Part shown: positions 16,118-49,446 of the stretch, piece by piece
Layout: the number at the start of each line of letters is the position of its first letter
Numbering within the stretch: the first letter of the stretch is position 1
Assembly: GCA_025594325.1 (NCBI GenBank)
Contig: JANHCV010000003.1
Location: 1,798,001-1,862,000 of the forward strand
Direction: 5' to 3'
Source: Blastocladiella emersonii ATCC 22665
Taxonomy: Eukaryota; Fungi; Blastocladiomycota
Length of the DNA: 64,000 bases
Notes under the pieces: model-generated
Told to the model about the DNA's origin: nothing
Database searches by the model: none
What the model saw: only the letters and a program-made list of their open reading frames with translations
Program-made: the position numbers and the translations under genes

Positions 16118-16348
16118 GTGCCGAGATGTTATTTATTCGTTCTTGTATCTGGGCCATTCTGGATCCGAAGGCGGAAGCTGTTGGTTGACCTTGGCCATGA
16201 GCGCGGCTACGCCAGCACGTGACAAGGTCGACCGAGTGCGCCGGGGCGCGGCCACGATCGCGGGCGCGCGAGCGAGAACGAAAACAAGAACAAGTTGTGT
16301 GGAAACAATAATTGTACAGCTAGTTCACCAAAATACTATCAACTTCTA

Positions 16349-18714: not shown

Positions 18715-18948
18715 AGTTGCAGAAAGTCCAGCGTGTTTATTTCATGCGAGTAACGTTGCAAGTACGAGTGCGAGGAGGGAACGGACAGGGTGGCGAGGAA
18801 CTCGCCTTGTTTCAGCCCGGACTCCGGCACGCCAGGTCACGAAGTGGCGCAACACGTCCCTCAGCGTCGGCAGGAGGGCGGCGCGAACCCGCTCCGAGGG
18901 AGCCATACGAGAACTAGGTATAATCGGATAGATCCATGTCACAAACCC

Positions 18949-21104
18949 TCAGGCCTCGTCTTCTTCGGCCTTACGCTGCCGCTCCTCCTCGTCAAGCCAC
19001 GGGATCCACGCGTTCATGTGCTCAGGCGTCGGCTGCGGCTTGCCCGGGTTGAGCTGGTGGAACTCGGCCACGGCCTCGGGCGCCGTGGGCGCCGTCAAGT
19101 GAGAGGGCGTCCACGGCCGCTTCTTGTCCACGCCGTGATGCCGCCAGTAAATCTTGTACTTGAAGCGCTGAAACGGATCCGTACTCTTGGTGTTGATCAT
19201 TGAGTCGATGATCGCCTCGACCTCAAACTCGTCCTCAGCGAACTTCGCGCCCGCCTGCTTGCACCCAGATGCTGACTGGCTATCGCCGCGACGCTGCATG
19301 TTGGCCAAAAAAGCAGGATCGGGCTCGTACGGGTCGCGGTGCAAGAGAATGTCGCCGACATTGATCGGTGCATGGACTGCCGCCCACTGCGCCAGCGGCT
19401 CCCACATTTGGTTGGCGGGTGTCGGGGTCCACAACGGGATCTTGGATATCGGCGGAGCAGCGGGCTCCGACTCGCGAAGCTTGGCGAGGTCCGCATCGGC
19501 GACCGAGCGCCGGACGCGGTCGCGCGAGCGGAACGGCACGTCCTCGCGCGTGTCACCGGGGACGATGCCGTTGAGCTCGGGCGGGAACTCGATACGCGCA
19601 GCGTGAACAAGCTGGCTGATGTCCGCCGTCGACTGCAGGAACCACGGCAAGTCCGCCGACGTGTACCCAAACGCGTCGAACAGCGACTTGAAGTTTGGGC
19701 AGCGGAGGTCGAGGACAGCTAAACGCGCGAGTGCAATTTGCGATGAGTTATCGTTTAATTTGGGAACAGCGAGGCATGTCAGACCGTACCATCGACCGTT
19801 TCGCGCCCATAAGCCGTGAGAATCCACTCGGCGTGTCGCGAAGCGTGCAACCACTCGATTGTTTCCGCAACCCCGCGCAGGAGTTTATCGATTTGATCGC
19901 TGATCATTTCGCGCTCCCAGAGATCATGAGAGCAGTTCGCAGCCCGCGCCATCTCCTCCAAGTTATCCCGGGCGTTGGAGGTTAATTTCCTGCGCGAGCG
20001 TGAGTCCGGCAGCGAAATGCGCCATTTGGCGCCGTAGCGGTTACGAGCGAGCCATGTGGGAAGGAATCTGAGCAGCTCTTTGACCTTTCGCTTGTGCGAT
20101 GGGTCCGATTGCGATGTCTTGAACGGTAGCATTTTTCGCGGTGCCTTACCCCCAGTCGACTTTCGAGGAGCAGGACGCCACGAATAGTACCGCCTGGGAG
20201 ATACAGAGACTGAGCGAGAGCGACCGAGAGCGGCTGAGCGAGCTGCTTCAGACTGACGTTGGGGCGTCACCGCGGACTGCAGTTGAGGGGGCGGGAGCGG
20301 CGAGCGCGGGTCCACGTCCATTGGCTCGCCGTCAGCAGGCTGATGTTGCGGGGCAGCAAGAAGCGAGAAAGGCTGAGGTGTGGCGGGTAGGGCGAGGGCC
20401 GCCGCAGCGGTTCGGCTGTCGAGAGTAGTGGAAGCGCTCGTTGGCCAATTATCACCTTCCGCTGACGGAGACAAGCCCGAGTTAGGCAGGCGTGGTGCTT
20501 GATCGTGAGCCGCAAAAAGCTGATCCGACGGCGGTGGAGACTGTAGTGAGGTAACCTCAGGCTGATCGACTGTCGCGGCCGCGAAAGGGGTCGGCTCGGC
20601 GAGACCAGGCTCCCGCTTGACGGGCGCCTCAAGCGGCGAAAAGGAACCGAGAATCGGGCCCCATAGCTCCAGCAGCCGAGGGTAAAGCGGGAACATTGAA
20701 GGCAGCGCAACTAATGGATCCAAGCAGGTCAGTTGAAAGGGACTGATGCGAAACCCCAAGAGGCCCGTACCGTCAAACTTGGCAAAAGATGGACCATCAA
20801 CCTCCGACGCGGCGCTCGCACGAGCCCGGAACTCGAGCAAGAAAGCAGTGCGAAGCGCAAGCAGCCGACCAGCGACCTGCTGCGGCGGACGCACGACACC
20901 GCCACCAATGGAGCTACGGAGGTGCTCGGTGATCTGCTCACAAAGAGCCTCAAACCGAGCGATAGACGTGCTCTCCGTGACAAAGTCGGTCAGATCGCGC
21001 TTCCGGGTCTGGAGGAAGCTGAGAACCTCGCCGTCGAGATCGGCGTCCGACCAAGCCGGTCCGGCCGGAGGCGGATCCAGGTGGTCGTGGAGCATGGTCG
21101 ACAA
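18949..21104 (-). CDS. Chromodomain protein, paralog 3, with an internal H3-tail-like motif (2 introns)
   Basis: Tandem duplicate of paralog 2 with the same intron positions; RKSTGGKAPRK at 20133-20165; chromodomain EFEVEAIIDS..KYKIYW. Confidence 0.8.
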
Positions 21105-21357
21105 GGATAAGGTTGCAGCAAGTTTCGGTGACTTAATTCATGGGTTTGCGTCGCGAGCATTGGCGCATTGGAGCGAGTGACTTGGCTGAGCCGGACGCGA
21201 AGTTGGCTCGGCGGTCCATCACGCCGTGGCGCAACGCTGGCCTTGAACTCGCTGTCATGGTTTCAGGACCGCCAACATCCTCCCTCAAGTAACCGTGTGG
21301 AAGTGCCGGAAAGCGAGGTATCTATCTATTCGTTCATGTAATCGCCCGCCTACTTCG

Positions 21358-24300
21358 TTACATCTGCGCCGTAAACACTTGCTGAATGATACTAGGCAAG
21401 TGCTGCGTCGTCTCGGCAAGGAACGCCTTGCCCGGGGGCAGCGCGCGCTTGAGCTCCTCGGCCTCGCGGCCGAGCGTGCCGATCAGGACCATAGCCGCGT
21501 GCACGTCGTTGCCGCCGATCGTGAGTGCGCGGGCGACCGAGCGCGGCGCGATATCGTAGCGGCGGAGGTTCGCGTCCGAGATGACGATGACGATGCTCGT
21601 GTCGTACATCTCGGCCTCGGCCGCGAGCTCGCGCACGGCCTTCTGGGTCGCCTCGAGCGTGTGGTCGCCGGCCCAGCAGTACTGCGAGTGCGCGACGAGC
21701 GTCTCGAGGACCTTGAACTGGTCCTTCTCGTGGCGCGGCGGGTTCTTGGCGTCGACGAGCGGGATCTGCGGCGAGTCGCCTGAGTGCGCGACCATGTCCC
21801 ACGTCAGCGTGGCCGCATCGACGCCGGCCAGCGCCTCCATGAGCATCACGGCGCACTCGAGCGACCGCGTGAGCCGGCCGTCGACGCCGTTGAACCGGTA
21901 CATGGACGCGGACGCGTCGAACACGACGCGCAGGCGTTTCGGCAGCTTGCCGCGACGGTCGTCGGCGGCCGCCGGGTCGGCGACACCGCGCCTCTTGAAC
22001 ACGGCGTGCTCGCCCGCGAGCCCGTCCACGAGCTTGGCGTCGTCGAGCTCGCCGTCCGTCTGGTGCCGCAGCCACACGCGCTCGTCGTCCTTGTTTGACG
22101 GGAGCGCGAGGACGACGCGGCGGAGCCGGTGCACGTGCCCGGCGACGGCGTTGCGCAGGTCCGTGTACGCGCGCATCTCGCCGTCGGCCATCCCAATCTC
22201 AGCGAGCCGCCGCGCGAGCGCGTCCTGGCCCATCTCGCGCGCCGCCTGCCGGATGTGCTCGGGGACGTTGGCCTTGACCTCGTCCGAGACCTGGTGCACA
22301 TCGTGCCCGGCGTCTAGCCGGTATGGCCCGCCGATCCCGCCAAGCCCCGCCGTGTCGCGGCCGCCGGTCCCGCCCGCCCACGTGTTGCCGCCAACGTGCG
22401 GGTTGTTGTTTGGGTCGACCTTGCCGTGCTTGGGCGCCGACGTCGACGTTGGCCCGTGGTTCTTCTGAATCTCGAGCCGCTGCCTCTTGGCCGCGGTGGA
22501 TGTGGGCGCGACCACGTCGACGAGCGAGTACCCCGGCATTGTGAGCCCGTGCCGCGCGAGCGTCGGGAGGACTACCGCCGCGAGCTCGTGCGCGTGCAGG
22601 TCAAAGTCGAGCACGTCGCGCAGCGCGTCGGCCGGCGAGTCGTTCGGGAACATGTCGAGGTGGCGGACGAGCGCGAGGAGTTCCTGGAGGCGGAGTTTGC
22701 AGCGTGAGCGAGTGTGACGTGAGGAAGTGATGCAGGAGAAATCGTACACGGAGACTGAACGGGTACGACACGGTCCCCTCGTCGAACGCAACGCGGAGCT
22801 CCTGGAAAGCCGCGACGAGCGACTTGAGCGTCGACTCGGCGAGCGACGGCGCCGCCTTGCGCAGGACGGCGAGCTCGGAGGCGGCGTCGAGGTTGTCGAC
22901 GGGGTGGCTAGAACGCATTCGCGTGAGTGTGTAGCCAAATTGCGAGCGAGCGACTTGACGTACCAGCTGAACACGTCGCCGATCGCGCCGATAAAGTCGT
23001 TGCCCATGAACGGCCAGCCGGGCTTGTTGGCGAGAAGGATGAGGCGGAAGTCCTGGCCACGCGGAGCGAGTCAGTCATCCCACTTGTCGGTGTCGGGCAA
23101 GGAAAAGCAGCGTACCGGATGCATGACAATGTCGCGCGGCCCAGCGTCAGCAGCATCGCGAACGACGCGGACACCGTTGGTCAGCGTCATCTCGCCGGCC
23201 TCGGCGAGACTCTTGAGGATCGATACGACGTGAACGGGGGCTACGCGACACGAAACAGTCAGCGTCGACGGATCCCCCACCGCAGAAATCCACGCGTACC
23301 CTTGTCGGCCTCGTCAATCACCGCCACATGCCCAAGCTTGATAGCCGCAACGAGCGGCGAGTCGCGGTACACGAGCACGCCGTTCTCGATGACGGGGACG
23401 ACGAGGAGCGATGACACGGTCGAGTCGCGGTGCAATTGCATGTACTGTCGCGCGCGCCCGATCTTGGCCAGGAACCAGTCGGCCGTCGCGTTCTTGCCAG
23501 TGCCCTGCGTCCCGCAGGCGAGGAGGTGCTCGCCCGCGGCCCAGTCGTACGCGAACGAGGCGAGGAGCTGCGCGTGCTGCGGGTTCAGGTGGAAGGACGG
23601 GACGTGCGGGATCAGCGACGGGTCCTGCGGCGCGGTCGCGGGCGGTACCGGCGGGAAGGCCGGGATCGTGTCGCTGTTGCGCTGGAGCGCGGGCTGGACG
23701 CCGAGGCGGTTCAGGGTCTCATCGAAGGCGCGGCGCACGAACGGCGGCACGAACGAGGTCAGGAACACGCGGTGCAGCTCGGCGCGGATGTCGTCGCTCG
23801 CGTCGTTGCCGCGGCCGCGAGCGAGGCGGATGAGTTGGCTACAATTGGCGAGAGGTGAGACTTGTGCGATGCGGCTGTGCGATGAGAGCGCGTACCGCAG
23901 GGTCAGCGTGTTCTTGAACACGTCGTGGTTGCGGAACTCGGCCGCGACGTTACACAGCATCGTGGCGCGCTTGGCGTCGCACTTGGCGACACGGCGGACG
24001 ATCTCGGCCTGCTCGGCGGGCGACGGGTCCGGCAGCGTGACGCAGCGGAACATCTCGCGGACGTCGTCCGAGAACCACGCGAGGTCGGCCTTCTTGACCG
24101 ACGCCGCGCCCTCGTCGTCGCTGAGCGCGGCACTCGGGACGGTCGCGACGGCGACGACGCGGAAGCTCGGGTGGATCACGCGGATCCCGTCAGGCAGTAC
24201 CCCGCCGTTCTCGCCCGCGAGCCGGTCCGCCTCGGTGCGGGCCACGAGGCGCGAGCCGTCGGGGAGCACCGTGTCGCGGTCGAGGACGAGCCGGGCGAGA

Positions 24301-27909: not shown

Positions 27910-28410
27910 AACGAGAGGGGAGCCAGAGTGGGGCCAGCCGCCACGGTGCATCGAGAAGGCGAGGCGGCGCCGCTCGCAACGTCTCTCATCTGAAACGGGG
28001 CGCTCCGCCAGCGCCACAGTGGATGCGAGTGACGCGAACACTCACGAGCGGGCGCGACGCGACGCGATCACAGCCGTGATCGACGACCTGATCCAGCACT
28101 TAACAGACTTGGATCGCACGAGAGCTTGAGCTCGGTAGGATTGTAAGAGCCAAGTGATCGACTAAGCACGTTCGCGAGCGACTACGTCGTGCGGGTGTGT
28201 GCTCAACCGTCAACCTGCCGTACACGCACGGTCAGCCGTCGATGAGCGGTTCGCGTCATCTCAGTTACATGGGCTCTCGGTGATAGCAAGGCTGCGAATG
28301 CGATAGACGGACGAGCAGCTTGACGAAAACTGCCCGACGTGTTCGAGCGTCAACCTCGATCCCCGACTTTGGGACCACGTTGCGACACCGCGACGGACGC
28401 GCGGAAGCCC
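27910..28410. repeat. Diverged outer extension of the palindrome (homologous to about 53827-54385 on the opposite strand)
   Basis: Manual alignment, e.g. gtgcgatccaagtctgt(t/a)aagtgctggatca is shared, with many transitions and small indels; the outer limit is approximate. Confidence 0.75.
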
Positions 28411-29028
28411 GCAACGAGACGCGGTGGCTCGCGACCAGAGCTCAACTCTCAAGCTTGAGCGCGGAACTGCCGTTTCAACGCGAGCACGCGTCAGGCCATC
28501 GACTCCTCCGTGAACACCCGCGCGCTTTGTCAGCAACGCTTGCAGGTGCACTATTTCCGTGGACGTGGTGGACGCTCGGAAGAGTCATCGGCGGGCCGCA
28601 GTGGCGCAGCAGCTGGCGCAGCCCCAGCCTCCCAGCCCCACGGTGGCGTCGCAGCCGCGCGGCCGCGTCCCAGTGCGCCGGATTTACGAACCTTTGACTT
28701 GCGACCAGTCAGGCCTCGCCTCGCGAGTTTCAACATGCGGCGACTCGGCCCCAGTTCCATGGCGCGTGTTGCTCGCAGCGCTCCGCTCACCTCAGCGATC
28801 GCTCGCGGCGTGCGCAAAAAATGGACCCACGGCGTGGATTGCGCGTCTGGTGCAGGACCCGCGGCCATGGACTCCCGCCAAAAAGTATAAAGCACGCGTG
28901 CTCCCGCGGCCTCGGGACCTGAAGAACGCCATCATCTCGAGCATCACACTCGCCCTAGACCGCCACCGCCGTCGTCGACGCACACACGCACTAGATCGAC
29001 CACCGACAACACCTAGAAGATCCTCGCC

Positions 29029-30606
29029 ATGACCAAGTCGTCCGCCGTGTTCCTCGCCGCCGCGGTCATTGCGCTCGCCAGCATCACCTCGTCGGCTGGC
29101 GTCAACGCTGCGCCGGCCGCCAACGCCGCGTCGCCGCTCCTCATCCCGGACGCGCGCGAGCTCATCAACGTGTCGTTTGGCAAGACCGACATTGAGTGGG
29201 TCTTCCCCGGCCAGTCCAACGCCCGTCGTCCGAGCGCCAACAACAACAACAACAACTCGGGCAACGTCGTGTTCCCCGGCCAGTCGGGCCGTCGCACCAC
29301 CACCGCGGCCGCCACGCCCAAGCCGACCGCTCCGGCCAACGGCGCCATCGCGTTCCCCGACGACGACGGTAACGTCGTGTTCCCCGGCCAGCCCTCCAAC
29401 CCGCCGCCCACCAAGCCCATCGCCCCCATCAACCCGACGCCCGTGACGCGCAACGGCCACGTCGTCGTGTTCGAGCAGACCATCGACATTGCCCAGGTCC
29501 AGCCCGGCGCCAAGAACATCTACTGGTCGCGCCTGCACTTTGACCGGTCCAAGACCAAGCTGCGCGAGAACTTTATCCGCGTCGACTTTCCGGGATTCGG
29601 CGAGGACCTGCCTGGCGACATCCTGCGCCTGACGTCGCTCGCCGACGGCGCGGTCCAGTACCTCAACTTCGAGTCGATTGAGCAGTGGAACTTCCGCTCG
29701 GCCGTCTTCAACGGCGGCAAGGTCAAGGTCGAGCTGCTCGCCGACCCCAACACGGACCCCAAGGAGAAGCCGTCGATCGTCGTGTCGCAGCTCGAGACCA
29801 ACACGCAGACCGGGTTCGGCTCCAACAAGGCGCAGCTGCCGCCGCCGGCGTCGCTGTGCACGGCCGCCGACGAGCGCAAGGCGTCGTCGGACGTTCGCAG
29901 CGTGCGCATCTTCCCCGTAGGTTGCACCGCCTGGACCATCACGGACAAGGCCGGGTGCCACGTCACGGCGGGCCACTGCTTTGACGGCAAGGTGCTCGAG
30001 GACCAGATCATCCAGATGAACGTGCCGCAGTCGGCGGTCATCACGTACGCGGGCCAGAAGACGGCGATCCTGCGCCACCCGCACCCCAAGTTCCAGTTCG
30101 CCGTCGACACCAAGTCGGTGCAGTTCAACCTGACGGCGCTCGGGCTCGGCGAGCAGGCCGAGGACTGGGCGTACTTTGGCACCTTCCCGAACCCCAACAC
30201 GGGCATGACGCACCGCGAGACCATCGGCAACAAGGCGTACACGCTCGCGGCCGTCGACCCCGCCACGGGCGACATTGCCCCGAACCAGGTCAAGGTCGGC
30301 AGCACGGTCAAGATCTACGGCTACGGCTTCGTCACGGCGCAGGCGCGCAAGCAGATGTCGCAGGTGCAGCAGGAGGACGACGGCAAGGTCGTCTCTTTCC
30401 CGGACCGCTTCCACATCCGCCACCGTATTGATACTGAGGGGGGCAATAGTGGCAGTGCTATCGCGATCGGAGACGTCGCCGTGGGCATCCACACCAACGG
30501 CGGGTGCACCGCGCGCTCCGCCGCGTCGGCCAACACGGGCTCGCTCGTCTCCATGCCCGCCTTCCAGCGCGCCATCAAGAACCCCAAGGGCGTGTGCAAG
30601 GCCTAA
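29029..30606 (+). CDS. Secreted trypsin-like (S1/V8-type) serine protease, intronless
   Basis: Signal peptide; catalytic motifs VTAGHC, EDWA and DTEGGNSGS; long propeptide with repeated VFPGQ motifs. Confidence 0.88.
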   Translation: MTKSSAVFLAAAVIALASITSSAGVNAAPAANAASPLLIPDARELINVSFGKTDIEWVFPGQSNARRPSANNNNNNSGNVVFPGQSGRRTTTAAATPKPTAPANGAIAFPDDDGNVVFPGQPSNPPPTKPIAPINPTPVTRNGHVVVFEQTIDIAQVQPGAKNIYWSRLHFDRSKTKLRENFIRVDFPGFGEDLPGDILRLTSLADGAVQYLNFESIEQWNFRSAVFNGGKVKVELLADPNTDPKEKPSIVVSQLETNTQTGFGSNKAQLPPPASLCTAADERKASSDVRSVRIFPVGCTAWTITDKAGCHVTAGHCFDGKVLEDQIIQMNVPQSAVITYAGQKTAILRHPHPKFQFAVDTKSVQFNLTALGLGEQAEDWAYFGTFPNPNTGMTHRETIGNKAYTLAAVDPATGDIAPNQVKVGSTVKIYGYGFVTAQARKQMSQVQQEDDGKVVSFPDRFHIRHRIDTEGGNSGSAIAIGDVAVGIHTNGGCTARSAASANTGSLVSMPAFQRAIKNPKGVCKA

Positions 30607-30949
30607 GACTGCGCACTGTTTGCATCTCTCTATAATAGCATAGCAATAGTTTGTCTCATCAATCCCGTCCGTCGCGCGAAAGAGTGTGGCGCATCGCGCT
30701 CATGTGAGTGGCGCATCGCGTTCTTTCGGGCCATGAAACCCCGCGACACGACCGCTCCTTGAGCTCCCGCTCTTGCACAAGCTACCAGAGTGAATAGCGA
30801 GCTCAATAATTTCAGCAGCATGAACAGCGTCGAACCATTTTGCGCAGAGTTTACGTGGTACCCGTTGCGGGCTTGTCGCATTGGAGGGGGTGTCTTGACG
30901 AGCGGTCGAAGCAGCACACCAGAAAGCGACGCGACCCAGACCTGAGCAT

Positions 30950-31090
30950 CACATGATTGATCGACGCGTCTCACGACGAACGTCGTGGTGTGCAGCCGCG
31001 GCACGATCGTTGAGCAGGGCGCGGCCGCCGCGCTCATGGCCATCGAGGGCGGTGTGTTCGCGTCCATGGTGCGCGAGCACCAGACCAAGC
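30950..31090 (+). pseudogene. Relic of an ABC-transporter nucleotide-binding-domain C-terminus
   Basis: VVCSRGTIVEQG....LMAIEGGVFASMV matches the VxxxGxIVExGxxxELxxxxGxYxxLV tail; no upstream domain. Confidence 0.5.
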
Positions 31091-31552
31091 GCGTCAATGC
31101 ACCTGCTCCCGCGATCATCTATCCCGAGACGGCCGAGTCGCGCGCCGCTCGTCGTCGTTCCGCCACATCGGCACGAACCGCGCGAGCAAGGCCTTCGACT
31201 CGCAGCTCTGCTGTTGCGCGTACATGGGAGACGCGTGTCGGAGACATCACGTGGCGCTGCCGATCACTGCTCCGATCGACGCCACATCGCCGTCGCTGCG
31301 TCAGCTGTTCTGTTCTATTTGAGGGAGTGTTATACACCACGATCTTGCCCTGTGCGGCCCCATGGACTTCATGCATTCAACAGATTAAGAGTCTCACTCT
31401 GGATACGTTCCCTTGCGGGGTGTATTCTGGGTACTGAGCGACGGGTCACCGTCCGCATCACGTCCGTTGGGTCAAGCGAGGCAGGTGACGGCGACCAAGT
31501 CGCTCCCTCCCCTCTCGTCCTCGAACCGAGGTGTCGAGAGGTACACCGAAGC

Positions 31553-31924
31553 GGCCTAGTCGGGCCCGCGCCGCGGAGCGTCGTGCGCGCGGGTTCATCC
31601 CTCGGGAGGGCCGGGGTTCCCATGCGGTAGGGGGTCCTTAGTCGCATTGAGCAGAGGCCTATCCGGGCCCGCGCCGCGGAGCGTCGTGCGCGCGGGTTCA
31701 TCCTTCGGGAGGGCGCGGGTCTCGACGCGTTTCGAGCCCGTCTCGCGACACTAACATCAAACGGCCTATCCGGGCCCGCGCCGCGGAGCGTCGTGCGCGC
31801 GGGCTCATCCTTCGGGAGGGCCGGGTTCCCCTCGCGTCAGGGGATCCTGAATATCACGTCACTTTGGCCTATCCGGGCCCGCGCCACGGAGCGTCGTGCG
31901 CGCGGGTTCATCCTTCGGGAGGGC
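31553..31924 (+). repeat. Array of four 59-bp direct repeats with unique 44/48/44-bp spacers (structured-RNA candidate)
   Basis: Repeats at 31553, 31656, 31763 and 31866; consensus GGCCTATCCGGGCCCGCGCCGCGGAGCGTCGTGCGCGCGGGTTCATCCTTCGGGAGGGC. Confidence 0.95.
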
Positions 31925-32499
31925 CCAGGACTTTGGCCGCAGTGCAAGCCTGAGTGTCGACCAAGAACACGAGCCTCGAGACCATGGCCAGGGCGGCGCC
32001 ACGGCGGCGCCGGCCCCCTCGCGCCATCGGCCCCCGCCGCCGGCGGGTGCCGGTTCTGGGAGCGCAGTTTTTTTTCGCGTCCAGATCTCAACACGTGAGT
32101 TCACCTGAGTAAGGAAACCAATTTCCGTCCGGTTTCATCGGGTTTTGAGATCGCCAAGAGAAGGCGCAAGCACCGGCGTGAGTTGAGCGAAGCTGGGGAG
32201 CGCGGCGGAGATCGCAGCGCGGAAAATGAAACGCAACAGCCGGGTGTTCGCGGCGCCCGCTCGGGCGCCTGGGTCGCCGCCCGCAAGTCGCACCTCGTTC
32301 TCTCTCCCCAGAACCCTTTCGCCCGCGAACGTACTACGCACTTCTCACGGAAACTTGGCGCTTCTGAGCACGCTCATCGTCGTCTCGCGTCGCACACTCC
32401 TGTCTCTGGCTCACAAACGCAATCCCACCTCGCCTTCGCCGTCTCCGTCCACGTCGTCGTCCGCCGAGGCCCTGATCCCTGCCGAGGACTGCTGCGATG

Positions 32500-32790
32500 A
32501 GGACGATGACGAGGAGGGAACGTGGCACGGTTTGTCGATTTGGCCGTGTACCTGATGTACGCGCGATACATTCATTGGCTAGCCCGCCGCGCTCGGTCAT
32601 TTCTTCTTGATTGTCAGACCCATTGCGAGCGAGACGGTCGCCAACTACTGGGCAGGCCACTGGAGCGAGGCAGGCGGCCGCGACGTGGGCTTCAACCTGA
32701 GAATGTTCGGCGCGCTTAATGGGTCCATTGGCCTGTTCAAGTTCGCGGCCAACTGGGTGCTTGCGTGTCTCATGGTCAAGGCCATATGGC
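32500..32790 (+). pseudogene. Relic of an ABCC/MRP-type linker and second transmembrane domain
   Basis: EEG..VDLAVYLMYAR and ANYWAGHWSE..FNLRMFGALNG.IGLF resemble the ABCC G-x-V..VY..Y and NYWLxxWS motifs; frameshifted. Confidence 0.5.
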
Positions 32791-33202
32791 ATGTACACAG
32801 ACCAATCGTCGGATCCGCGCTACATCGCCCCCATCGTCGCCATCGAACTCCAATGCGTGAAGTTGGGAATCTTGGAGCTTGAGCCGATGCCGGAGAATTG
32901 AAGGCGGGGGGTCGGCGAGGTGACATCCTCTGCTGCTGCGCCACCCACCTGCTGCGCCACCCATTTGCGCCGCCCGATATGCAGTGCCACAACCGTCGAG
33001 CTGGCACTCTTCGGCTGAGCCGAATGCACTTTGGCGTAATGCACTCGCACTTGGCAAAATGCAGGACGTTGCATGCCACAAACGCGTCATCCGGGCCAGA
33101 GCTATAAAGCAACTGTGGTAACCTCTCAGGCTCTGTTCCTTCTCCCGTCCTAGGCCGCGGACAGTCCGACTGACTCACCACATCCCATTATCGTTCAAAA
33201 CA

Positions 33203-33901
33203 ATGTCCTTTCGTAGGGTGCTTACCCAAGTGCGGACTCTGGCCACCGTTTCGCCACACCTCATACGTGTCCCCCCAAAGTCAAACGTCACAGCTGCCGT
33301 CAATCGCTCCGCAGGACGTTATGCAGGTCGGTCGGCACTCAAATCGCAGGAGCAATCGCACGGACTTCCGAAAGAAGCAGCTCGCAGCTCAAACGCCATG
33401 ATGCCCGAGGCACAGCAAATTCAACAGCAGCAGCCCAAGAATGGTTTGCAGCAGCAGCCACGGCTCGTGGAGATTGTCCATCGTGAGCATGCGGAACCAG
33501 GCGCAAAGAAGGCTTGGAGCCTCGAATCCAAGCACACGGTGTACGAGGTTGATGCGCAGGAGTTGGAACAAGTGGTGAAGCGCACAATTGATGCCTTCAA
33601 GTTAGCCCAAGCGGGTCCAGATCCAGAGCAGCGCACCACCAACCAAGTACAAATTTCTCCGCACGAGACGGTGACTTATCGCGAGCAAACGGGCTCAAAT
33701 CCGGACTCCGACTGGACCATCGACATCAAGTACAATATGCGCCAGAAGGGCAGGGTTGACCCGCAGAAGACTCAAGCGGCGATGGAGGCTGTGTTCAAAG
33801 CCTTCCGCGCCGCCGAAGCAATCATGGAAGAACCCGATGAGAACTTGTACTCGTGCAGCAGCAACAAGACGGGCAAGTCATCGGAAATGGAAGTCGAGTG
33901 A
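33203..33901 (+). CDS. Orphan 232-aa ORF with a presequence-like N-terminus
   Basis: ATG-started, non-repetitive ORF with visibly lower GC than the neighbouring genes; no family recognised. Confidence 0.45.
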   Translation: MSFRRVLTQVRTLATVSPHLIRVPPKSNVTAAVNRSAGRYAGRSALKSQEQSHGLPKEAARSSNAMMPEAQQIQQQQPKNGLQQQPRLVEIVHREHAEPGAKKAWSLESKHTVYEVDAQELEQVVKRTIDAFKLAQAGPDPEQRTTNQVQISPHETVTYREQTGSNPDSDWTIDIKYNMRQKGRVDPQKTQAAMEAVFKAFRAAEAIMEEPDENLYSCSSNKTGKSSEMEVE

Positions 33902-34621
33902 TGAATGACCTGGTCATATTGGCTGTCGTTGTTTGAAAACATGATTCGTGACTGCGATTGTATGCGAAGCTGGTGTACGAGTAAGTTGACTTTGGCATTA
34001 CTGCTGAGTCGCCAAGGTTCGTTGATTTCGGGTTCAGGCTGGTGAGAGCTGGCAACAAGTAGTCGCCCAACCGTTAGGCGGGTTGTGAGTTGTCGCTTGA
34101 GTTGAACTTGAGTAATCTTCAAGAGTCGTACTTGTACTGACCGCGCTGCTCCCAGTCGTTCAAATGGAACAAGTGCTTCAACTCGGGCATAGTGGATCGC
34201 TGACATTCAGACGCATGCGCTTGTCTTTCTCGCCTTGCGTACGTTTCGTCCCCACGGCGCCCGACAAAGCAACAACGCGCCCTCACGGTAGTCAGCGAGG
34301 AGGAGATCAGCGGCGGCCGCCGTTCCAGCACCGTGGGCTCTCTCTCTCTCTCTCGCAGAGCCGCTCTTCGGATCGAACCGTATCGGACACACAGCGACCG
34401 CCATCGTGAATTCGCCACTCGTTGCGTGGTTTAAGCAAAGGTAAGGACGGCCATCTGCACAAGCTCATCAACCCGCGTCTTGCGGTCTCCGCTGCTACGG
34501 CCATAGCTTCCAACGCCGCCCAAAAACACGCACAGCGCGGGCACTGCCCTGCGGCCGCCCGGCGCCAGCGACCAGATGCGCGCACCGTATGCAGCACTCA
34601 GGCTTCCCGCTGTGTCGCGTC

Positions 34622-34659
34622 GCGCGGTTCCCCGACCCTGGCGCGGTTCCCCGACCCTG
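34622..34659. repeat. 19-bp perfect tandem duplication (GCGCGGTTCCCCGACCCTG x2)
   Basis: Seen directly; mirrored in the right arm. Confidence 0.9.
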
Positions 34660-34959
34660 GCGGCGAGTATTGCCGACGAAGCGGCAATGTGCACATCTCG
34701 TTTAACCTGTACGCGATGGACCGTGGTCCGAATGGAAGCGCTCCCGCGGTGCGCAAGCACCGTACGTGGGGCGGGCTTTAGCCCTCGATTGAACACCAAA
34801 TGCTTTGGGTTTGGGTGTTCCAAGTATCATGTGCAGGTTTCTGCTGCAGCTGCCACCCTTCAAGCTATCGACTGACACAGGCGGGTGCAAACCAACACGT
34901 GCTTTGTGGACACGCGGAGGTGAGCGTAGCATTGCTGGCCAGCTGCCTGGCATCATGTA

Positions 34960-35247
34960 CTTGTCGTCGTCGTCGTTCTCGAACGACGACTTCTCGAGCG
35001 TGTCGGCCGAATTGCCGCGAACAGGGCTTTCCACACGTTGGTGTTGGTTTAGAGCAGGACCTGCAACAGGCGGATCTCGCGCTTGGGTGCCGCCCTTGTT
35101 GCGCGCAACGAGCAGCCCAAGGAACCGCTGGCTGACGCGGTACCCGACAAAGTTGAGCATGCGCTCGAGGTCCTGCACGCCCTTGGTGCTGCGCTGCGAG
35201 TACTGAACGAGCTTAGAAAAGAGGAAGCCGAAAGCCAACAGCGACAT
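34960..35247 (-). pseudogene. TRS31: TRAPP subunit TRS31/TRAPPC5 fragment
   Basis: SLLAFGFLFSKLVQYSQ..GVQDLERMLNFVGYRVSQRFL, then KREIRLLQVLL*TNTNVWKALF and ADTLEKS..END..YM in shifted frames. Confidence 0.75.
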
Positions 35248-36819
35248 GTCCGTGTTGCGCGGGCGGTTCGGGTTGCGGCTCAGGATCTGATCTGATCCGA
35301 ACCGTGATGTATGGGCAGCATTCCCGTTCTCCTCTACACGGATACGGCATCCGACCAGCTAGCGAGCCGGCTTGCCCTGATTGCTTCCACTACTCGCGTG
35401 GCACTGTTGCCTCAAACATGTGTTCAGCGCGACGCCTCAAGCAGGAATCTCCACACTCCATGGCGGAGATCTCGCTCACAACTTGTGCAAGCGATCTCAT
35501 CATACCTGATGCGAGAGCTATGAACCTTTTCCGTCGTCAGTTGGGCTGAGTTTGAGTTGACCAAGGTTCGTGCTTTTACCTCGACAAGGAAGGGAGGCGA
35601 GCGGACTGCCTCCATTGCGACGCGTGCGCGCGAGGTCACGCGGAGGTGAGCGTCGCGTCGCCAGCCGCGCCTTCGGCCTCGCTCACGTGACACAACTTAG
35701 CTTTATAAATTTGAGATGCATCGTAAACATTTTTCTGAGGGCAGATTCGTGATCAGCGACCTTCAGAGGCCCGGAATATGTCAAAAACTCCGAGTCGAGG
35801 TGTCGGGGTACCGAGAACTCGTCCGACCGTGCAAAGTTGAAAAAAACTTTCGGTTTGGTCGCTCGGACGAAAAACGCACTTAAGGCTTAGCTTCTTGAAT
35901 TGCATTGTGTTACCGAATCACCTGACACTTTGACAACATACATAGTATAAATTATAAGACGCTCCGGCACTCGCAGAATAATTATACCATTTAATCTGAC
36001 GCTCAGGGCCACGGTGTGAGTTAGCTTCAGTAATCGAGCCTCCCTTCGCCCACCGCCAAAGGCGCCACGCCTCCGCCGCGGAGGAGGCCTGCCGCGCTCC
36101 CGCTCCCGCTCCCGTTGATCCCTCTGCAGCGCTAACCCGACGCATCGAACGGAGTCCACACCACCTGCAACGTAAGCATGTCATCGAAATAAGACAAGCT
36201 GTCCGATATCGTATGGGCGCGAGCCCGCTGGTTGCCCACCATCTCCAGTGACCAACACCAACCCTGGCACTCCATTTCTAGGCCCGGGACCAGCCCGGCG
36301 TCTACGAGACGCCCAACGTGTCCGCCCTCCCCGCGGCTGCCATGGCCGAGGACTCGCACAACGCGGGACTTGACGGGGCCGAAATGGACGACGCGGTGGC
36401 AGGGGCAACGGGCCACGGGCCCGCCGAGTTCAGCGACGGCGAGGACACGGACAGCGTCGTGGTCCGCACGCGGCTGTCGGTCCGCGCGGCCGCTGGCACC
36501 TTTGCAAATGCTGGTGTTGACGCGTCAGGTGCCGGTACGCTGCGCGATGATTGCGGTTGGGTTGGGCGATGCTTACAACCCCGCCTGGCATTGTAGAATT
36601 CTCGGGCGCCGTCAGCTCGCGCACCACCATGTTCCGCACGTACAACCGCGCGGCGTACAAGGCGCCGGCGCGGTCGCGGGCCGTGCGCGGGTCGCCCGCG
36701 CAGAAGCTGGCGCGGCTGTTCTTGTGCTACTATACTAGCGGCAGTCCACCACCGCACGAGCTCATGCGCGACGCGTCGACGCATGCGCCCGAGCACGGCC
36801 TCGTTCTATATCCCGGCCG

Positions 36820-37790
36820 CGCGGCTTGCCACGCTCGGCAGCGCCGACTCAGAGGCGCCCAAACGACCAGCTCGCGTCCAGTGTCCACCGCATCGTCCAC
36901 AAGCTGCGCCGCGGTAACGAGAAGGCGCCCGTCCCGCGCTGCGCCGCGACTACTGGATGAAGGATGAGGCGGGCAAAGAGTGCTACAACTGCAAGAAAGA
37001 CGCCCTTCTCAACGTTCCGCCGGAAGCACCATTGCCGTATCTGGTATGGACTCTTCAGTGCTCGCTCAGACGCGGCTTCCGCTAACGACCCTCATTCTTA
37101 ACGGCCAGATCTTGTGCTACCGGTGCGCGTCCAACACTATCCTGGGCGAGTCGCTCGAGCTCGTCGGCTTCACCTGCGTGTGCGACTACGGCTATTGCCT
37201 CCACGTGGTGCGGTCCTACTCGGAGAACCGGGCGTCGCCGCCAGCTTTGCCGCGCCTGATCTCGCGGCCCTCGCCGCCCGTCAAGGACGAGGACTGCCGC
37301 CGCACCTTCTTCCACCGGCACCAGTCGCTGCCCACGCGCACGTTCGTCGTCCTCGCCAAGTTCTGGCTCGAACCCCAACACGCTGCACCCGCTGCTCGAC
37401 CCGACGAGCATGACCCACCCCAAGCGGCTCATCCAGCTGCTGCTCTTGGCACGCCGCGGGCTCAGTACCGCGTGGGAGCAGATCATGTGCGATATGACGG
37501 CCGAGGTGCGCCAAAAGGTGAGCTGCACTGCACCGTGCAGGACATGGACGTGCGGCACTTCATCAAGTTCAAGAAGGCGCCCAGCGCCAAGCCCGCCGAC
37601 ACCTTCTTCCTGAGCGGCGCGGCGACCAAGAAGACGCTCGCGTACCGCAAGATGGAGCAGACGATGCAGACCCCGCGCATCATGGTCCTCACGTTCCTGC
37701 TCGAGTACAACCGCGTGCAGGACCAGTTCATCGGCATCAACCCCGCCATCTCGCAGGCGCAAGAATACCTGCTCAACCTGCAACCGCCTC
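36820..37790 (+). pseudogene. FAB1: FAB1/PIKfyve relic (FYVE domain plus part of the CCT-like domain)
   Basis: RDYWMKDE.GKECYNCK..FRRKHHCR, GQILC..CASN, DMDVRHFIKFKK, PRIMVLTFLLEYNRV and QEYLLNL; several frameshifts. Confidence 0.8.
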
Positions 37791-41499: not shown

Positions 41500-42370
41500 G
41501 TGACGTGGCGGCCGGAGCCGTGATGATGTTGGCGCCCGCAAAGTGGCCAGTGTTCTCGAGGACGCCGAGCTTGATGTTGTAGGCCACCGAGACGTCCATC
41601 TGGTACAGGTGCTCGAGCGCGCTACGCGCAACCGTCTTCTCGACGAGGACCACGTGCTGAGCCCGCGGCGCGCCGTGAGCCGCTGGATGGACCGCTTGAG
41701 GCGGCCTGTGCTCGTCGGGTCGAGCAGCGGGCGCGGCGTGTTGGGCTCGAGCCAGAACTCGGTGATGAGGACGGACGCGCGCGGGGGCAGCGACCGGCGC
41801 CGGTGGAGGAGGGTGCGAGGGCGGTCCTCGTCCTCGACGGGCGTCGAGGGCCGCGAGATCGATCTGCGACTGCAGGAGGACCAGGGTCGGGGGCGGACGC
41901 GGCGGGGGCGGCAGCGACTCCTGGTTCTCCGAGTAGGACCGGATCACGTTTAGGCAGTAGTCGCACACGCGGATGAAGCCGAGAGGAAGCCGAGAGGAAG
42001 CCGAGCGGCTCGGCCCGGCTCGGCTCGGTGGGGAAGGTGTTGGATGCGCGCGCCGGCAGCAGAGGAAGGAAGACCTGGCCGCTGCGTTTGCGGCAGTGGT
42101 TAGCAATACTCACAAAAGCACAGTGAGTTTAGCTCCCGTACCAAACTACCAACCGCGGCAATGGTGCTTGCGGTGGAATTCGGAGAGGGGCGACATGCAG
42201 TTGCAGCAGCAGCACATCATGCACGCCTCGTCCTTCATCCAGTAGTCGCGGCGCCACGCGGGCGCCTCGTCGTCACCGCGGCGCAGTTTGCGGATGATGA
42301 TGATGCGGTGGAAACCCGACTCGAGCTGGTCGTCAGGCGCCTCCGAGTCGGCGTCGCCGTGCGTGGCGAG
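41500..42370 (-). pseudogene. FAB1: Second, independently decayed FAB1 relic (inverted relative to 36820-37790)
   Basis: RRDYWMKDE..FHRKHHCR, GQVF, RVCDYCLNVIRSYSEN and VSVAYNIKL; clear nucleotide homology to about 36820-37470. Confidence 0.75.
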
Positions 42371-45300
42371 CCACGAACTCGCGAAGTAGGTGGGCGGGAC
42401 CGCGCAGTGGTCAGACACCGACTCCAGGATGTCGTTGCATAGAGTCGGCACAGTGCATTTGTGCGATACATGTTCGGGTGGGGGGTTCGGCGGAACGGAG
42501 GTCGTCAAAACAGGGGATCTGGTCAAAATCCCCCCATTCGACGCGCCCACAAATCCATGGCTGACATCACGCGACCGACGGACGCGTGGCGCCACCTCGG
42601 CGCGTCGGTCGCGTCGCCTCGTTGCACGATCGATCCGTTTTGAGCGACCGTAACCTACAGACGGCTACGATAAGCTCATGCAAATCATGGCGATCTACTT
42701 CCCGCACTTGCCCGCCTTGGCCATCCCAGAGATCCTGCTCGGCGCGCGCCGTCAACGCTTCGCTACAACAAACTGGCCGGCCTCGGAGCCGTGCTTCAGA
42801 AGGAAGAAGTGGGGCCACAGAGCTAGGCACTAACAGGCGCGAATAGCTGACGAGGCTTATTCGAGAGTCTGGCCGAGCACGAGATCCCACTTTCTTCTTG
42901 CTCCCTCAAGAGCTCAAACATGCGGACCCCCTCCTTCTGCTTTCTCGACGCGCGATTGCCGAGCCCAACGGAGCTCATCGTCCTCGTGACGAGCTCCCAA
43001 CTTTGACTACCTTGCCGTGCCATCGATCGTTGGGGCGGCTTCTCGACGTGGGCTTCCTCCTCGTTCCCCCGTCGTGGTTCGCCACGCCGAATCGAGGGCT
43101 GCGTGCGGGCCACTTGCTCAAGCGGCTCCTGCTCCTTCCGAGCGACCCGACCCGCAGCGGTTCAGCTGGCCTGAGCACTTTTGCATGCTGTCGCTCAAAC
43201 CTTTGCGGCTGCACGCGTCGGCTGCACGCGTCCCTCACGCCTCGTCTGCTTCCGACCGAGGTCGGCCCGCTTGTACATTTGCGGATGCGAGTCGTATTCG
43301 GTTAATGAATTGCTGCAGAACCTTGACGCGGCCAACGGCCATTGATCACAGCGGGTTCCTGCGGGGCTCCGAGGCTCCGAGGCTCTCAGAGTCTGTACCA
43401 CTCAAGCGGCATCAACGGCACCACGCTGGTCGCGATATCGCTCGAATACCTGCCGTCCACCCCTTTATCTCGCGCGCGACGACCTTGGCGGGAGCGACCT
43501 GCGGATCAACTTTGGGCCATGTATTATTCACTGCCCCTTGGTAGCGTCTGCACTTCGGGCCGCGCGTACGCATCGGTCACCTTTTCCTGGCGCCCAAAGC
43601 TTGACACCTGGGTGGGTCCTTGTGCTACTTTGCGGACGATTTATCGCAGACGTATAAGAACTGTGGGATTTCTCGTCGCAAGTTCAGCGACATCGAAGGA
43701 CGCATGATCGCGGCCCCGGCTTGCTTCACGACGACCAGTTCAACTTGAGACAGAGCTAGCGATACGATACCACTGATATGAATGTCAAGCAATCAACCAA
43801 CCTGAATGCGCGATGGCCGCGGGGCAAAACGAACTTGCTGTTTGAGTTCTTTGAGGGGGGTGGGGGGTGGGGGGTGGGGGTGGGAGAAGCGACGACGCGC
43901 GGCGACGCGGTGTGGGGGGAGAATCTGCGATCAAATCAGCGATCGGATCAGATCACTTTTCTTGAGTGGCGCGACGCGACGCGTCGACTGTTTGTTCCCT
44001 CGGCCCGGTCGTGTGTGCGTGGCGGGTGACCTTGGGAGACATTGGATTGTTTTAGCGCCTCTTCAGAAATGAAAGACGAAACGATTGATAAACTTGAAGC
44101 AGTTCCCTGCTCGACGACTTGCCGTGGCGTGCTTCCTGGTCCCGCTTCAAGTCCAGTCAGTCAGTCAGTCAGTGGTCTTTCGCTCGACTCGACGTCGAGC
44201 GCGGTATATGCTGGACTACGCCCAGGTGGATTAGCGGGGCGGGCGGGCGGTTGGTTTATGCATGTGGCCATGCTTGCTGCGAGTCGCCGTCGCGTGTTGC
44301 TCGTTTAGAACGACGGGCGCGGCGCGCGCGCGGTACATCCGGGACACGGCCATTATTTAGGCAAACTCGATCGCATGGGTAACTGCCGAAAGTGGTCCGT
44401 TAGTCTAAGGCGGCCGAGGCGGGGAACTACTCTACCGTAGTACTTTATTCGGGCGGCGGTTCGACTCTCACGGGTCGGGCTTCCGTCCAAACTACGCGCA
44501 ATCGATGCTTCCCTTCACTTTTGTTTCGCCGGCGCCTGATTCTGATCATTGAGTTCTTTTTTGTTCCTTTTGTTTGATTGATGTGGTAGTAGTAGTAGTA
44601 TTGCGCTCATACCGGCTGGCGGACGGAGTCTCCCCGCCTTTTCCTTCCTCTGCAAAGCCCGCCAAAGGATCAACCAAGTCGATCTGTCGCGAAGGTCCAG
44701 CAGCGCTCACACGACTGATTTTGACTTGGATTTCGATATACTACTACTAGTACTGGCCTGCGGGTGCTCGACGTCACAAGCTTGCTTGTCCGTTTCGCGT
44801 CGCGTCCGTGCGTCGCGGGGCGAAATCCCTGTAAAAGCGCGAGGACCCGGCGCGAGACACGCACGCCGCCCAGGTCCCTCGTTGTTTTCAAGAAGGTGTG
44901 CGAGCTGTACGCAGGCAGCTAGCTAGGCAGCCCGAGAGCGAGCGTATGACCCGCTTGCAGCTGGACGCTCGCGTCGGTCGCTGGAGTGGAATGGAAGCGA
45001 GGATCGGCAAAGGCGCGCGCAAACGGCGACGACCAAGGTCCATAGAAGCCTTGGAGGGACCCGACCGAGAAGGTCGCGGCGGCGTCGGAGAGCCCGCTGC
45101 TGCTGCTGCTGCTGCTGCTGCGAAGGCGATCGTGTCCGAGTGAGAGAAGAGAGGCGGGAAGGAAGTCGCATGGGCGGCGGGCGAGCGAGGCGCGGGCCGC
45201 GGAGTAAACGTGCCGCGCCAAAGATGCGCGCGCCTTCGCCTTTTTGAGCAATCGAGCGATCGAGCGAGCGAGCGAGCGAGGGGATGATGATGGACGCGGG

Positions 45301-46989
45301 TCATCTCGTGGTGCCAAAGGCGTGTCGAGACAGAGTCCCGCGCCGCGGAGCTGGCCACCGCGACGCGACGCGACGCGACGGGCAACCCGCTCGCTGGTTG
45401 CAGCGTCGGGACCAAGTACCGAGCGCAACTGGCCCCGTCCGCTCGATCGACAAACAGAGAGTGCGGTGTGTAAGGTATCTCAAGAGCTGTCCAAGGTGCC
45501 CGACGGGACGCCGCTCGAGTCCGCGGATCGCGACAGGGCGATCATTGGTGGTACTGCATCCGCTTATCATCGACAGTGCCGTTGCGGGTAGTCCGAGTCT
45601 CACCAGAAGCAGGGGTGGGTGCTGGGTGCTGGCTGCACCGGGGCGATCGAAGCGACGCGACGAAACGAAACGCGACGCGACGCGCCCGATTCGGAACGTC
45701 TCACCTCACGTGAGGCGCACGCACGCCGTGTCTCTCGCCCCTTTTGCTCACGTGCGCTGTGTTTCGCGACGCGTCGGCGACGCGTTTTTCGTCTCGCCTC
45801 GGGTCCCCCCGGTGCCGGCCACGTCACCGTGCCCCCGCCACCGCGTCGTTCACTTTGGCCCCGTCAAGTCCCGCGTTGTGCGAGTCCTCGGCCATGGCAG
45901 CCGCGGGGAGGGCGGACACGTTGGGCGTCTCGTAGACGCCGGGCTGGTCCCGGGCCTAGAAATGGAGTGCCAGGGTTGGTGTTGGTCACTGGAGATGGTG
46001 GGCAACCAGCGGGCTCGCGCCCATACGATATCGGACAGCTTGTCTTATTTCGATGACATGCTTACGTTGCAGGTGGTGTGGACTCCGTTCGATGCGTCGG
46101 GTTAGCGCTGCAGAGGGATCAACGGGAGCGGGAGCGGGAGCGCGGCAGGCCTCCTCCGCGGCGGAGGCGTGGCGCCTTTGGCGGTGGGCGAAGGGAGGCT
46201 CGATTACTGAAGCTAACTCACACCGTGGCCCTGAGCGTCAGATTAAATGGTATAATTATTCTGCGAGTGCCGGAGCGTCTTATAATTTATACTATGTATG
46301 TTGTCAAAGTGTCAGGTGATTCGGTAACACAATGCAATTCAAGAAGCTAAGCCTTAAGTGCGTTTTTCGTCCGAGCGACCAAACCGAAAGTTTTTTTCAA
46401 CTTTGCACGGTCGGACGAGTTCTCGGTACCCCGACACCTCGACTCGGAGTTTTTGACATATTCCGGGCCTCTGAAGGTCGCTGATCACGAATCTGCCCTC
46501 AGAAAAATGTTTACGATGCATCTCAAATTTATAAAGCTAAGTTGTGTCACGTGAGCGAGGCCGAAGGCGCGGCTGGCGACGCGACGCTCACCTCCGCGTG
46601 ACCTCGCGCGCACGCGTCGCAATGGAGGCAGTCCGCTCGCCTCCCTTCCTTGTCGAGGTAAAAGCACGAACCTTGGTCAACTCAAACTCAGCCCAACTGA
46701 CGACGGAAAAGGTTCATAGCTCTCGCATCAGGTATGATGAGATCGCTTGCACAAGTTGTGAGCGAGATCTCCGCCATGGAGTGTGGAGATTCCTGCTTGA
46801 GGCGTCGCGCTGAACACATGTTTGAGGCAACAGTGCCACGCGAGTAGTGGAAGCAATCAGGGCAAGCCGGCTCGCTAGCTGGTCGGATGCCGTATCCGTG
46901 TAGAGGAGAACGGGAATGCTGCCCATACATCACGGTTCGGATCAGATCAGATCCTGAGCCGCAACCCGAACCGCCCGCGCAACACGGAC

Positions 46990-47277
46990 ATGTCGCTGTT
47001 GGCTTTCGGCTTCCTCTTTTCTAAGCTCGTTCAGTACTCGCAGCGCAGCACCAAGGGCGTGCAGGACCTCGAGCGCATGCTCAACTTTGTCGGGTACCGC
47101 GTCAGCCAGCGGTTCCTTGGGCTGCTCGTTGCGCGCAACAAGGGCGGCACCCAAGCGCGAGATCCGCCTGTTGCAGGTCCTGCTCTAAACCAACACCAAC
47201 GTGTGGAAAGCCCTGTTCGCGGCAATTCGGCCGACACGCTCGAGAAGTCGTCGTTCGAGAACGACGACGACGACAAG
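46990..47277 (+). pseudogene. TRS31: TRS31 fragment (mirror copy)
   Basis: Same translation as 34960-35247. Confidence 0.75.
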
Positions 47278-49034: not shown

Positions 49035-49446
49035 TGTTTTGAACGATAATGGGATGTGGTGAGTCAGTCGGACTGTCCGCGGCCTAGGACGGGAGAAGGA
49101 ACAGAGCCTGAGAGGTTACCACAGTTGCTTTATAGCTCTGGCCCGGATGACGCGTTTGTGGCATGCAACGTCCTGCATTTTGCCAAGTGCGAGTGCATTA
49201 CGCCAAAGTGCATTCGGCTCAGCCGAAGAGTGCCAGCTCGACGGTTGTGGCACTGCATATCGGGCGGCGCAAATGGGTGGCGCAGCAGGTGGGTGGCGCA
49301 GCAGCAGAGGATGTCACCTCGCCGACCCCCCGCCTTCAATTCTCCGGCATCGGCTCAAGCTCCAAGATTCCCAACTTCACGCATTGGAGTTCGATGGCGA
49401 CGATGGGGGCGATGTAGCGCGGATCCGACGATTGGTCTGTGTACAT

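Follow-up and report, generated by a model that had tools for sequence, protein, structure and literature searches.

What kind of element is a short tandem array of nearly identical, folding repeats in a gene-free part of a fungal genome, and does it act as RNA, as DNA or not at all? This question is raised by a locus of the zoosporic fungus Blastocladiella emersonii ATCC 22665 (assembly GCA_025594325.1, contig JANHCV010000003.1), in which 64,000 nt of nuclear DNA, referred to here as the window, carry an array of four units at 31553-31975 on the + strand. Each unit consists of a 60-nt constant module, followed by a bulged hairpin (P4) of differing sequence and a tail of 17-21 nt (∼23 nt in unit 4). 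An earlier note, made from the letters of this DNA, had described the repeats and proposed guide-like or ribozyme-like functions for them. In this study, the array was analyzed by folding, alignment, covariance modelling and searches for relatives. It is read here, tentatively, as a candidate lineage-specific structured non-coding RNA (ncRNA) that is encoded on the + strand and carries repeated protein-binding modules. This reading is favoured by constant modules that are 93-97% identical between units (two to four of the 60 positions differ), as opposed to spacers that are no more alike than shuffled sequence, and by edges of the conserved block that coincide with the strands of the helix closing the module.

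Architecture of the array

The units start at 31553, 31656, 31763 and 31866, and the resulting periods of 103, 107 and 103 nt were obtained alike with Tandem Repeats Finder, with a repeat finder and by direct reading, in agreement with the four near-identical repeats of the earlier note. The repeat length of 59 bp given there needs correction: the conserved block is 60 nt long, and the 60th base of unit 2 is a G that breaks the last closing pair. A pattern of the 40-nt core gave eight matches in the window versus none in 100 shuffles. The array occurs twice. Copy A (31553-31975, + strand) scores 99-115 bits per unit with the covariance model described below, and copy B (50262-50684, - strand), which is identical to A and inverted, was located by the core pattern, the inverted-repeat comparison and the same model. 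The array had previously been reported at 31553-31960 only; the + strand assigned to that copy stands, and the second, inverted copy had gone unmentioned.

Contigs of short reads from four DNA runs, all made on a single sample, reproduce the unit junctions without differences, and pieces specific to the spacers have a read depth equal to that of the flanks (∼300 in run X1). Four units per arm of the palindrome that contains both copies are thus confirmed, and the array did not arise as an artefact of assembly.

The constant module

RNAfold and RNAalifold fold the constant module into a closing helix P1 of 5 bp (GGCCU/GGGCC), a hairpin P2 of 14-15 bp with one bulged C and a mini-hairpin P3 (UCC-UUCG-GGA) of three pairs, which is capped by UUCG or, in unit 1, by CUCG. 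An alternative fold is a rod of 23 bp, in which columns 7-10 are paired with columns 51-54; it lies within ∼1 kcal/mol of the three-way junction, and the two suit the four unit sequences equally well. The RNAalifold consensus returns the junction together with P4. By fold and alignment, the modules occupy 31553-31612 (unit 1, P1 + P2 + P3, with private differences at columns 7, 8 and 49), 31656-31715 (unit 2, last base G rather than C), 31763-31822 (unit 3) and 31866-31925 (unit 4), all on the + strand. Each carries five G.U pairs. In unit 3, a change of U to C at column 42 converts the G.U pair 12/42 into G-C, and in unit 4 a change of G to A at column 21 converts the G.U pair 21/32 into A-U.

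The fold proposed earlier for the repeat, with its closing helix, bulged-C hairpin and UUCG mini-hairpin, is therefore recovered by both programs, and the stem variants said to keep their pairs are seen in the alignment as well as in the fold. They do not amount to covariation of the module, since they are two one-sided transitions at G.U pairs and none is two-sided; of the covariation looked for between copies, the part that concerns the constant module is absent, whereas two-sided change is present in the variable hairpin P4.

The first and last bases of P1 are also those of the conserved block. The 43-47 nt outside this block show, in the same alignment, a similarity between units at the level of shuffled sequences, and the unit length stays at 103/107/103 although the spacers are near saturated divergence. 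These features bear on another account of the locus, namely a neutral minisatellite of 103 bp in which the core has been homogenized by short-tract gene conversion, the rest has drifted and the hairpins arise from G+C richness. Such an origin would suit an element found at one locus with four units, and the palindrome arms that carry it, being 100% identical over 8 kb, fit active gene conversion or a recent duplication; furthermore, similar hairpins are found at 7-11% of the sites in the adjoining DNA. However, conversion has no reason to stop at the same two bases, the ends of P1, in every unit, the unit length has been kept despite saturated divergence, and a bulged hairpin is placed at the same column in all four variable parts. 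A neutral minisatellite is accordingly considered to be an improbable explanation.

The variable hairpin and the folding strand

Folding placed a hairpin in all four variable parts, starting from column 60 or 61 directly after P1, with one base left unpaired beyond the first 3-5 bp, so that the bulged or mismatched hairpin claimed earlier to follow each repeat is borne out in every unit. The common plan is a lower stem of 3-5 bp, then either a 1 x 1 mismatch or a single base unpaired on the 5' side, then 3-6 bp and a loop. On the + strand, the P4 of unit 1 (31613-31638) has 9 bp, including four G.U pairs, and an 8-nt loop, and forms on this strand only; that of unit 2 (31715-31741) has 5 bp, a bulged U, 5 bp and a 6-nt loop; that of unit 3 (31823-31848) has 3 bp, a U x U mismatch, 6 bp and a 6-nt loop; and that of unit 4 (31926-31952) has 4 bp, a bulged A, 3 bp and a larger loop. 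Reading outward from the bulge, the upper stems are C-G/U-A/C-G/G-C/A-U in unit 2, U-A/C-G/C-G/C-G/C-G/U-A in unit 3 and C-G/U-A/U-A in unit 4. Read from the folds and the alignment, at least five stem positions have changed on both sides among these three units, which supports, indirectly, the maintenance of P4 through two-sided changes.

For a statistical comparison, the P4 motif was specified as a hairpin that starts at column 60 or 61 and has 3-5 bp in its lower stem and 3 bp or more in its upper stem, with one unpaired base between the two and 4-12 nt in the loop. Against shuffled sequences, the p values were 0.11, 0.008, 0.005 and 0.075 for units 1-4, with a combined p of ∼2e-4 for a motif set post hoc. 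Hairpins of the P4 type with at least seven pairs have a background of 6.9% of sites in the adjoining non-coding DNA. Because the motif was set after the data had been seen, the test is supportive rather than decisive.

The predicted fold also depends on the strand. A 651-nt stretch containing the array has a folding energy of -346.7 kcal/mol on the + strand versus -315.7 kcal/mol on the - strand, with z-scores of -3.7 and -1.5, respectively, and the z-scores of single units range from -1.2 to -2.6 on the + strand versus +1.2 to -0.9 on the - strand. The + strand folds better because of its G.U pairs, five of which lie in each constant module and four more in the P4 of unit 1. When the whole array is folded, the identical P2 arms of neighbouring units readily mispair. 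Taken as predictions, these results indirectly support a structured, single-strand-specific element instead of a plain minisatellite.

The same results bear on a reading in which double-stranded DNA is the active form and the units are tandem protein-binding sites of an enhancer, insulator or origin type, their fold being incidental to G+C-rich near-palindromes. The constant module is indeed conserved in sequence without compensatory change, the array lies in a long intergenic region free of genes and the fold z-scores are modest, all of which such sites would explain. On the other hand, an invariant footprint of 60 bp is long for a DNA-binding site, and neither the two-sided changes in P4 nor the nine G.U pairs favouring one strand are expected of duplex DNA. 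Binding sites in duplex DNA are thus regarded as an unlikely identity for the array.

Tails and descent of the units

The tails, delimited by direct reading, are 17 nt long in unit 1 (31639-31655), 21 nt in unit 2 (31742-31762) and 17 nt in unit 3 (31849-31865), while that of unit 4 (31953-31975) is similar to the stretch preceding unit 1, a likeness with which the alignment is compatible. This preceding stretch (31513-31552, + strand) contains a small hairpin, CCTCG-AAC-CGAGG, and a segment like the tail of unit 4; the 26 nt upstream of unit 1 show the resemblance on direct reading, and a free-end alignment is compatible with it. A weak motif is common to the tails, units 1 and 3 share hairpin sequence in P4, and CGGGT and CGCGT are common to units 2 and 3. 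On account of these shared spacer sequences, the tail motif and the likeness between the pre-array stretch and the tail of unit 4, the units are diverged copies of one 103-bp ancestor, an old tandem duplication of which one part has been frozen and the other left free. The pre-array stretch, judged by its sequence, marks the left edge of the ancestral duplication.

Common descent changes the meaning of the spacers. They had been called unique and non-alignable, and the tails guide-like; the hairpin and tail sequences shared between units tell against the former, and the latter gives way to tails that are diverged copies of part of an ancestral unit. The search for complements of the tails that the earlier note had called for was likewise empty: at up to three mismatches, the tails, the hairpins and their complements gave self-matches only in the window and 108 kb of other B. 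emersonii DNA.

A polycistronic array of guide RNAs of the type of clustered regularly interspaced short palindromic repeats (CRISPR), omega-RNA or small nucleolar RNA (snoRNA), or a tandem self-cleaving ribozyme, would account for the layout of a constant module, a hairpin and then a predicted single-stranded tail of 17-21 nt. However, weakly homologous tails have diverged and were not acquired, no tail has a target at up to three mismatches in 172 kb of this genome, the open reading frames (ORFs) scanned contain no nuclease, cas or TnpB-like domain, and no C/D or H/ACA boxes stand in register. As to a ribozyme, the junctions are tiny and their bases differ between units, and a single unit matched no ribozyme or other Rfam family at an E value of 10, which leaves the ribozyme reading of the earlier note unsupported. 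An array of guides or ribozymes is therefore very improbable. Also rated as highly unlikely is an undescribed class of small eukaryotic RNAs from tandem genes, in which an invariant scaffold would be joined to a fast-evolving hairpin and a single-stranded tail giving each unit its specificity, as a programmable or target-specific system of an early-diverging fungus.

CRISPR arrays are defined by mutually unrelated, acquired spacers, repeats of 23-47 bp, cas genes and a prokaryotic or viral genome. The present array is similar in that constant repeats alternate with spacers of nearly constant length, but it is eukaryotic and nuclear, its repeat is 60 nt long, its spacers are related by descent and fold, it has four units and the ORFs scanned hold no cas gene.

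Searches for relatives

Rfam gave no match at E ≤ 10 with a 2.5-kb sequence or with a single unit, and none at the gathering score with the window. The covariance model R1, built from the four units, was run on the window and on seven B. emersonii loci; both there and in the 108 kb around five paralogous protease genes, it found the eight known units only. Two weak hits, at 36722-36799 of the window and at 4490-4616 of locus L006, were rejected as G+C-rich hairpins without P3 and P4. The check by Rfam and covariance model that had been suggested thus agrees with the earlier failure to fit the array to CRISPR, ribozyme, snoRNA or transfer RNA (tRNA) patterns: Rfam is empty, ARAGORN found no tRNA gene in the window and the features of CRISPR arrays are lacking. 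Metagenome and viral collections gave no match to exact patterns or to patterns tolerant of variation within the P2 structure. Among the DNA contigs of the strain, at a likeness of at least 80%, the array and its flanks were matched by their own locus alone, which shows that the module is not dispersed as a repeat in this strain. Within the collections searched, the array belongs to no known family and is private to this genome.

Several specific candidates were also compared and rejected. A tRNA-like gene, with its cloverleaf, T-loop and anticodon arm, is contradicted by the negative ARAGORN result, and GGGTTCATCC falls short of a T-loop/B-box by two bases. In a cluster of snoRNAs, every unit would have C (RUGAUGA) and D (CUGA) boxes beside a terminal stem, or two hairpins joined by a hinge with ANANNA and an ACA 3 nt from the end. 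This does not agree with a CUGA in only two of the four tails, nor with the empty Rfam result; a GAUGA of the - strand is separated from the terminal stem by 10 nt, and the ACA/AGA boxes do not stand in register between units. The topology of the constant module and its UCC...GGGA/GGGCC segment look similar to the Alu domain of the signal recognition particle (SRP), which has a closing helix with two hairpins, a U-turn linker of the UGUAAU type and G-C pairs between loops; this was not borne out, as the module has a single-A linker and a UUCG loop on P3, and a single unit matched no SRP model. A bulged hairpin of the iron-responsive element type, an enhancer repeat of the ribosomal DNA spacer and the three-way junction of telomerase were each dismissed for want of any defining feature. 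The double-hairpin elements of Allomyces are mitochondrial, whereas the array is nuclear, and a literature search for them returned papers on mitochondrial genomes only. Lastly, the array does not travel with the V8-like protease family next to which it lies: no array was found at the paralogous loci L001-L003, L006 and L007.

These searches also bear on a relic of a rolling-circle transposon of the Helitron2/Helentron type, in which the units would be repeated termini or internal repeats of a non-autonomous derivative and the hairpins single-stranded DNA signals for Rep. In Helitron2 elements, both ends carry hairpins, the 3' terminus is T-rich and its hairpin stands 30-50 bp upstream, and fungal copies with a duplicated 5' terminus, in which the first 31-85 nt are repeated once, have been described (PMC5148889). 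Tandem repeats are reported to be carried by non-autonomous Helitron2/Helentron derivatives (PMC4067079; PMC7492417). Compared with such termini and repeats, the array is similar in being a short series of ∼100-bp hairpin units with strand-specific hairpins and a T-rich stretch downstream. A run of eight T residues (T8) does lie 93 nt past the array, with G+C-rich hairpins 25-70 nt ahead of it, both of which are unspecific features, and a strand-specific hairpin fits single-stranded DNA as well as RNA. However, the arm contains no Rep/helicase or other transposase domain according to Pfam, no other copy of the array or its flanks was found at a likeness of at least 80% in the strain contigs, and no homologous array is present near the five paralogous loci searched. 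The sole candidate for the asymmetric terminal inverted repeat of such elements is 12 nt long and matches at 11 of 12 positions over a distance of 730 nt, which is no more than 1.7 kb of G+C-rich DNA yields by chance. Moreover, termini are the conserved part of a transposon family, whereas here the hairpin and tail vary. The earlier note had allowed that the unit might prove to be a subterminal repeat of a known transposon family; the strain contigs at ≥80% and the ORFs of the arm tie no known family to the array, and a transposon relic in the broader sense is considered unlikely.

The palindrome and its genes

The two copies of the array lie in the arms of a large palindrome. The left arm (28378-36407) carries copy A and the right arm (45830-53859) carries copy B, and over these 8,030 bp the inverted arms are 100% identical in the inverted-repeat comparison. 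The wider palindrome comprises 28043-36407 and 45830-54226, an alignment of 8,398 bp with an overall identity of 98.2%. Outside both ends of the perfect arms, the identity drops to 98% and then to ∼70-80%: the outward flanks include ∼340 bp of lower identity (∼82% in one extended segment), and the inward flanks are 69-86% identical (36820-37468 versus 41654-42375). The centre, of 9.4 kb, is asymmetric, and both array copies are directed towards it. From its sequence, the palindrome looks like an old inverted duplication, the middle of which has been held identical by gene conversion. Elsewhere in the window, a direct repeat of ∼1 kb (16362-17346 and 18962-19894, 74-81% identity) and an inverted repeat of 114 bp (1003-1116 and 2654-2767, 98%) are unrelated to the array.

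Copy A is situated in a gene-free stretch of 5.6 kb (30607-36212), as judged by the NCBI annotation and a lack of third-position G+C periodicity. The third-position G+C is 0.9-0.98 in the adjoining protease gene, and no periodicity is present over the array. Pfam matched none of the ORFs that overlap the array; among 26 ORFs from the arms and the centre it returned, apart from noise below the threshold, only the protease and a TRAPP fragment, with no transposase, Rep/helicase, integrase or nuclease domain. The array begins 947 bp past the stop codon of the gene for a V8-like serine protease on the same strand. Immediately past this gene is an A+T-rich stretch, which probably ends the protease messenger RNA. 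Upstream of the array, a stretch at ∼31300-31420 is richer in A+T, and downstream of it is the T8 run (32068-32075, + strand, by direct reading), preceded by G+C-rich hairpins; from their sequence and position, the former could be a promoter and the latter a transcription stop. The contig from one DNA run is one base shorter both in the T8 run and at 31417, and these differences are probably homopolymer or assembly noise.

The protease gene is intronless, resembles the V8/Glu-specific endopeptidases and is present in both arms (29029-30606, + strand, and 51631-53208, - strand). Outside the Blastocladiales, the nearest relatives of its product are proteins of Planctomycetota and other bacteria, with identities of 33-39%, and by this sequence comparison it may be an old bacterial acquisition shared with Allomyces and Catenaria. 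A paralogue with 78% identity is found as an inverted pair ∼5.3 kb apart on the same contig, JANHCV010000003.1 (2323891-2352964), and the placement of protease genes within palindromes may recur in the B. emersonii genome. The locus of another paralogue (L007) has 8.6 kb without called genes (12432-21032), and a tandem repeat with a period of 57 or 111-117 bp lies at its end (21158-21425).

Two further ORFs lie in the gene-free part of the left arm. One, at 34702-35247 (- strand), encodes part of a TRAPP (Bet3-like) domain, namely its N-terminal half (Pfam E value 1.7e-07), in an unannotated stretch and looks like a gene fragment. The other, at 33203-33901 (+ strand, 232 amino acids), has a coding-like G+C content of 0.68/0.36/0.62 at the three codon positions, the third being far below that of the host genes; it has no Pfam match and no homologue among 5.8 billion proteins.

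Possible function and biological meaning

On the reading as a structured ncRNA, each constant module would fold alone into a closed domain, either the three-way junction or the nearly isoenergetic 23-bp rod. The function would reside in the module, which most likely binds a single protein, and with four modules per array and eight per haploid genome the transcript could serve as a multivalent RNA-protein scaffold. P4 would be stacked directly on P1 and kept for its shape rather than its sequence, and it would probably favour local folding of a module over pairing with the neighbouring unit. Alternatively or in addition, the array may be processed into ∼100-nt units. Transcription, the transcript ends, protein binding and processing are inferred features of this model.

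In its possible working, the array might resemble by analogy the tandem structured repeats of long ncRNAs. In the Xist A-repeat, such repeats within a long ncRNA form a multivalent platform for protein binding. Both have short, G+C-rich conserved hairpin cores and poorly conserved linkers of similar length; the present array differs in that it has no sequence relation to Xist, a longer core, whose 60 nt form a closed junction or a rod, structured linkers and a zoosporic fungus as its host. In clusters of the microRNA type, tandem paralogous hairpins lie in polycistronic precursors. Hairpins of ∼60 nt at a spacing of ∼100 nt, drifting sequence between them and a rod of ∼23 bp would fit this pattern, but the loop and unpaired bases of the array are as conserved as its stems, eight additional bases of its 3' arm are unpaired and the three-way junction is preferred in the consensus fold.

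A number of points weigh against the ncRNA reading and explain the caution with which it is put forward. The constant module has no two-sided change across the four units, and its only changes at paired positions are the two transitions at G.U pairs, in which pairing is kept automatically. The appearance of purifying selection could also result from gene conversion that affected the constant part alone. The single-unit z-scores of -1.2 to -2.6 are modest for a sequence of 70% G+C, two of the four P4 hairpins are not significant singly (p of 0.11 and ∼0.07) and the P4 motif was chosen after inspection of the data. The collections and loci searched yielded no homologue outside the locus from which conservation across species could be judged. 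Furthermore, no RNA run is listed for the strain, and the text of the genome paper does not mention RNA sequencing.

The meaning of the locus for the organism depends on whether the array is transcribed. If it is not, it would be a curious but minor minisatellite. If it is, it would represent a new family of structured RNA in the Blastocladiomycota, a phylum for which, to our knowledge, almost no ncRNAs have been described, and it would provide a natural case of conserved RNA modules that are parted by insulator hairpins conserved in shape and free in sequence.

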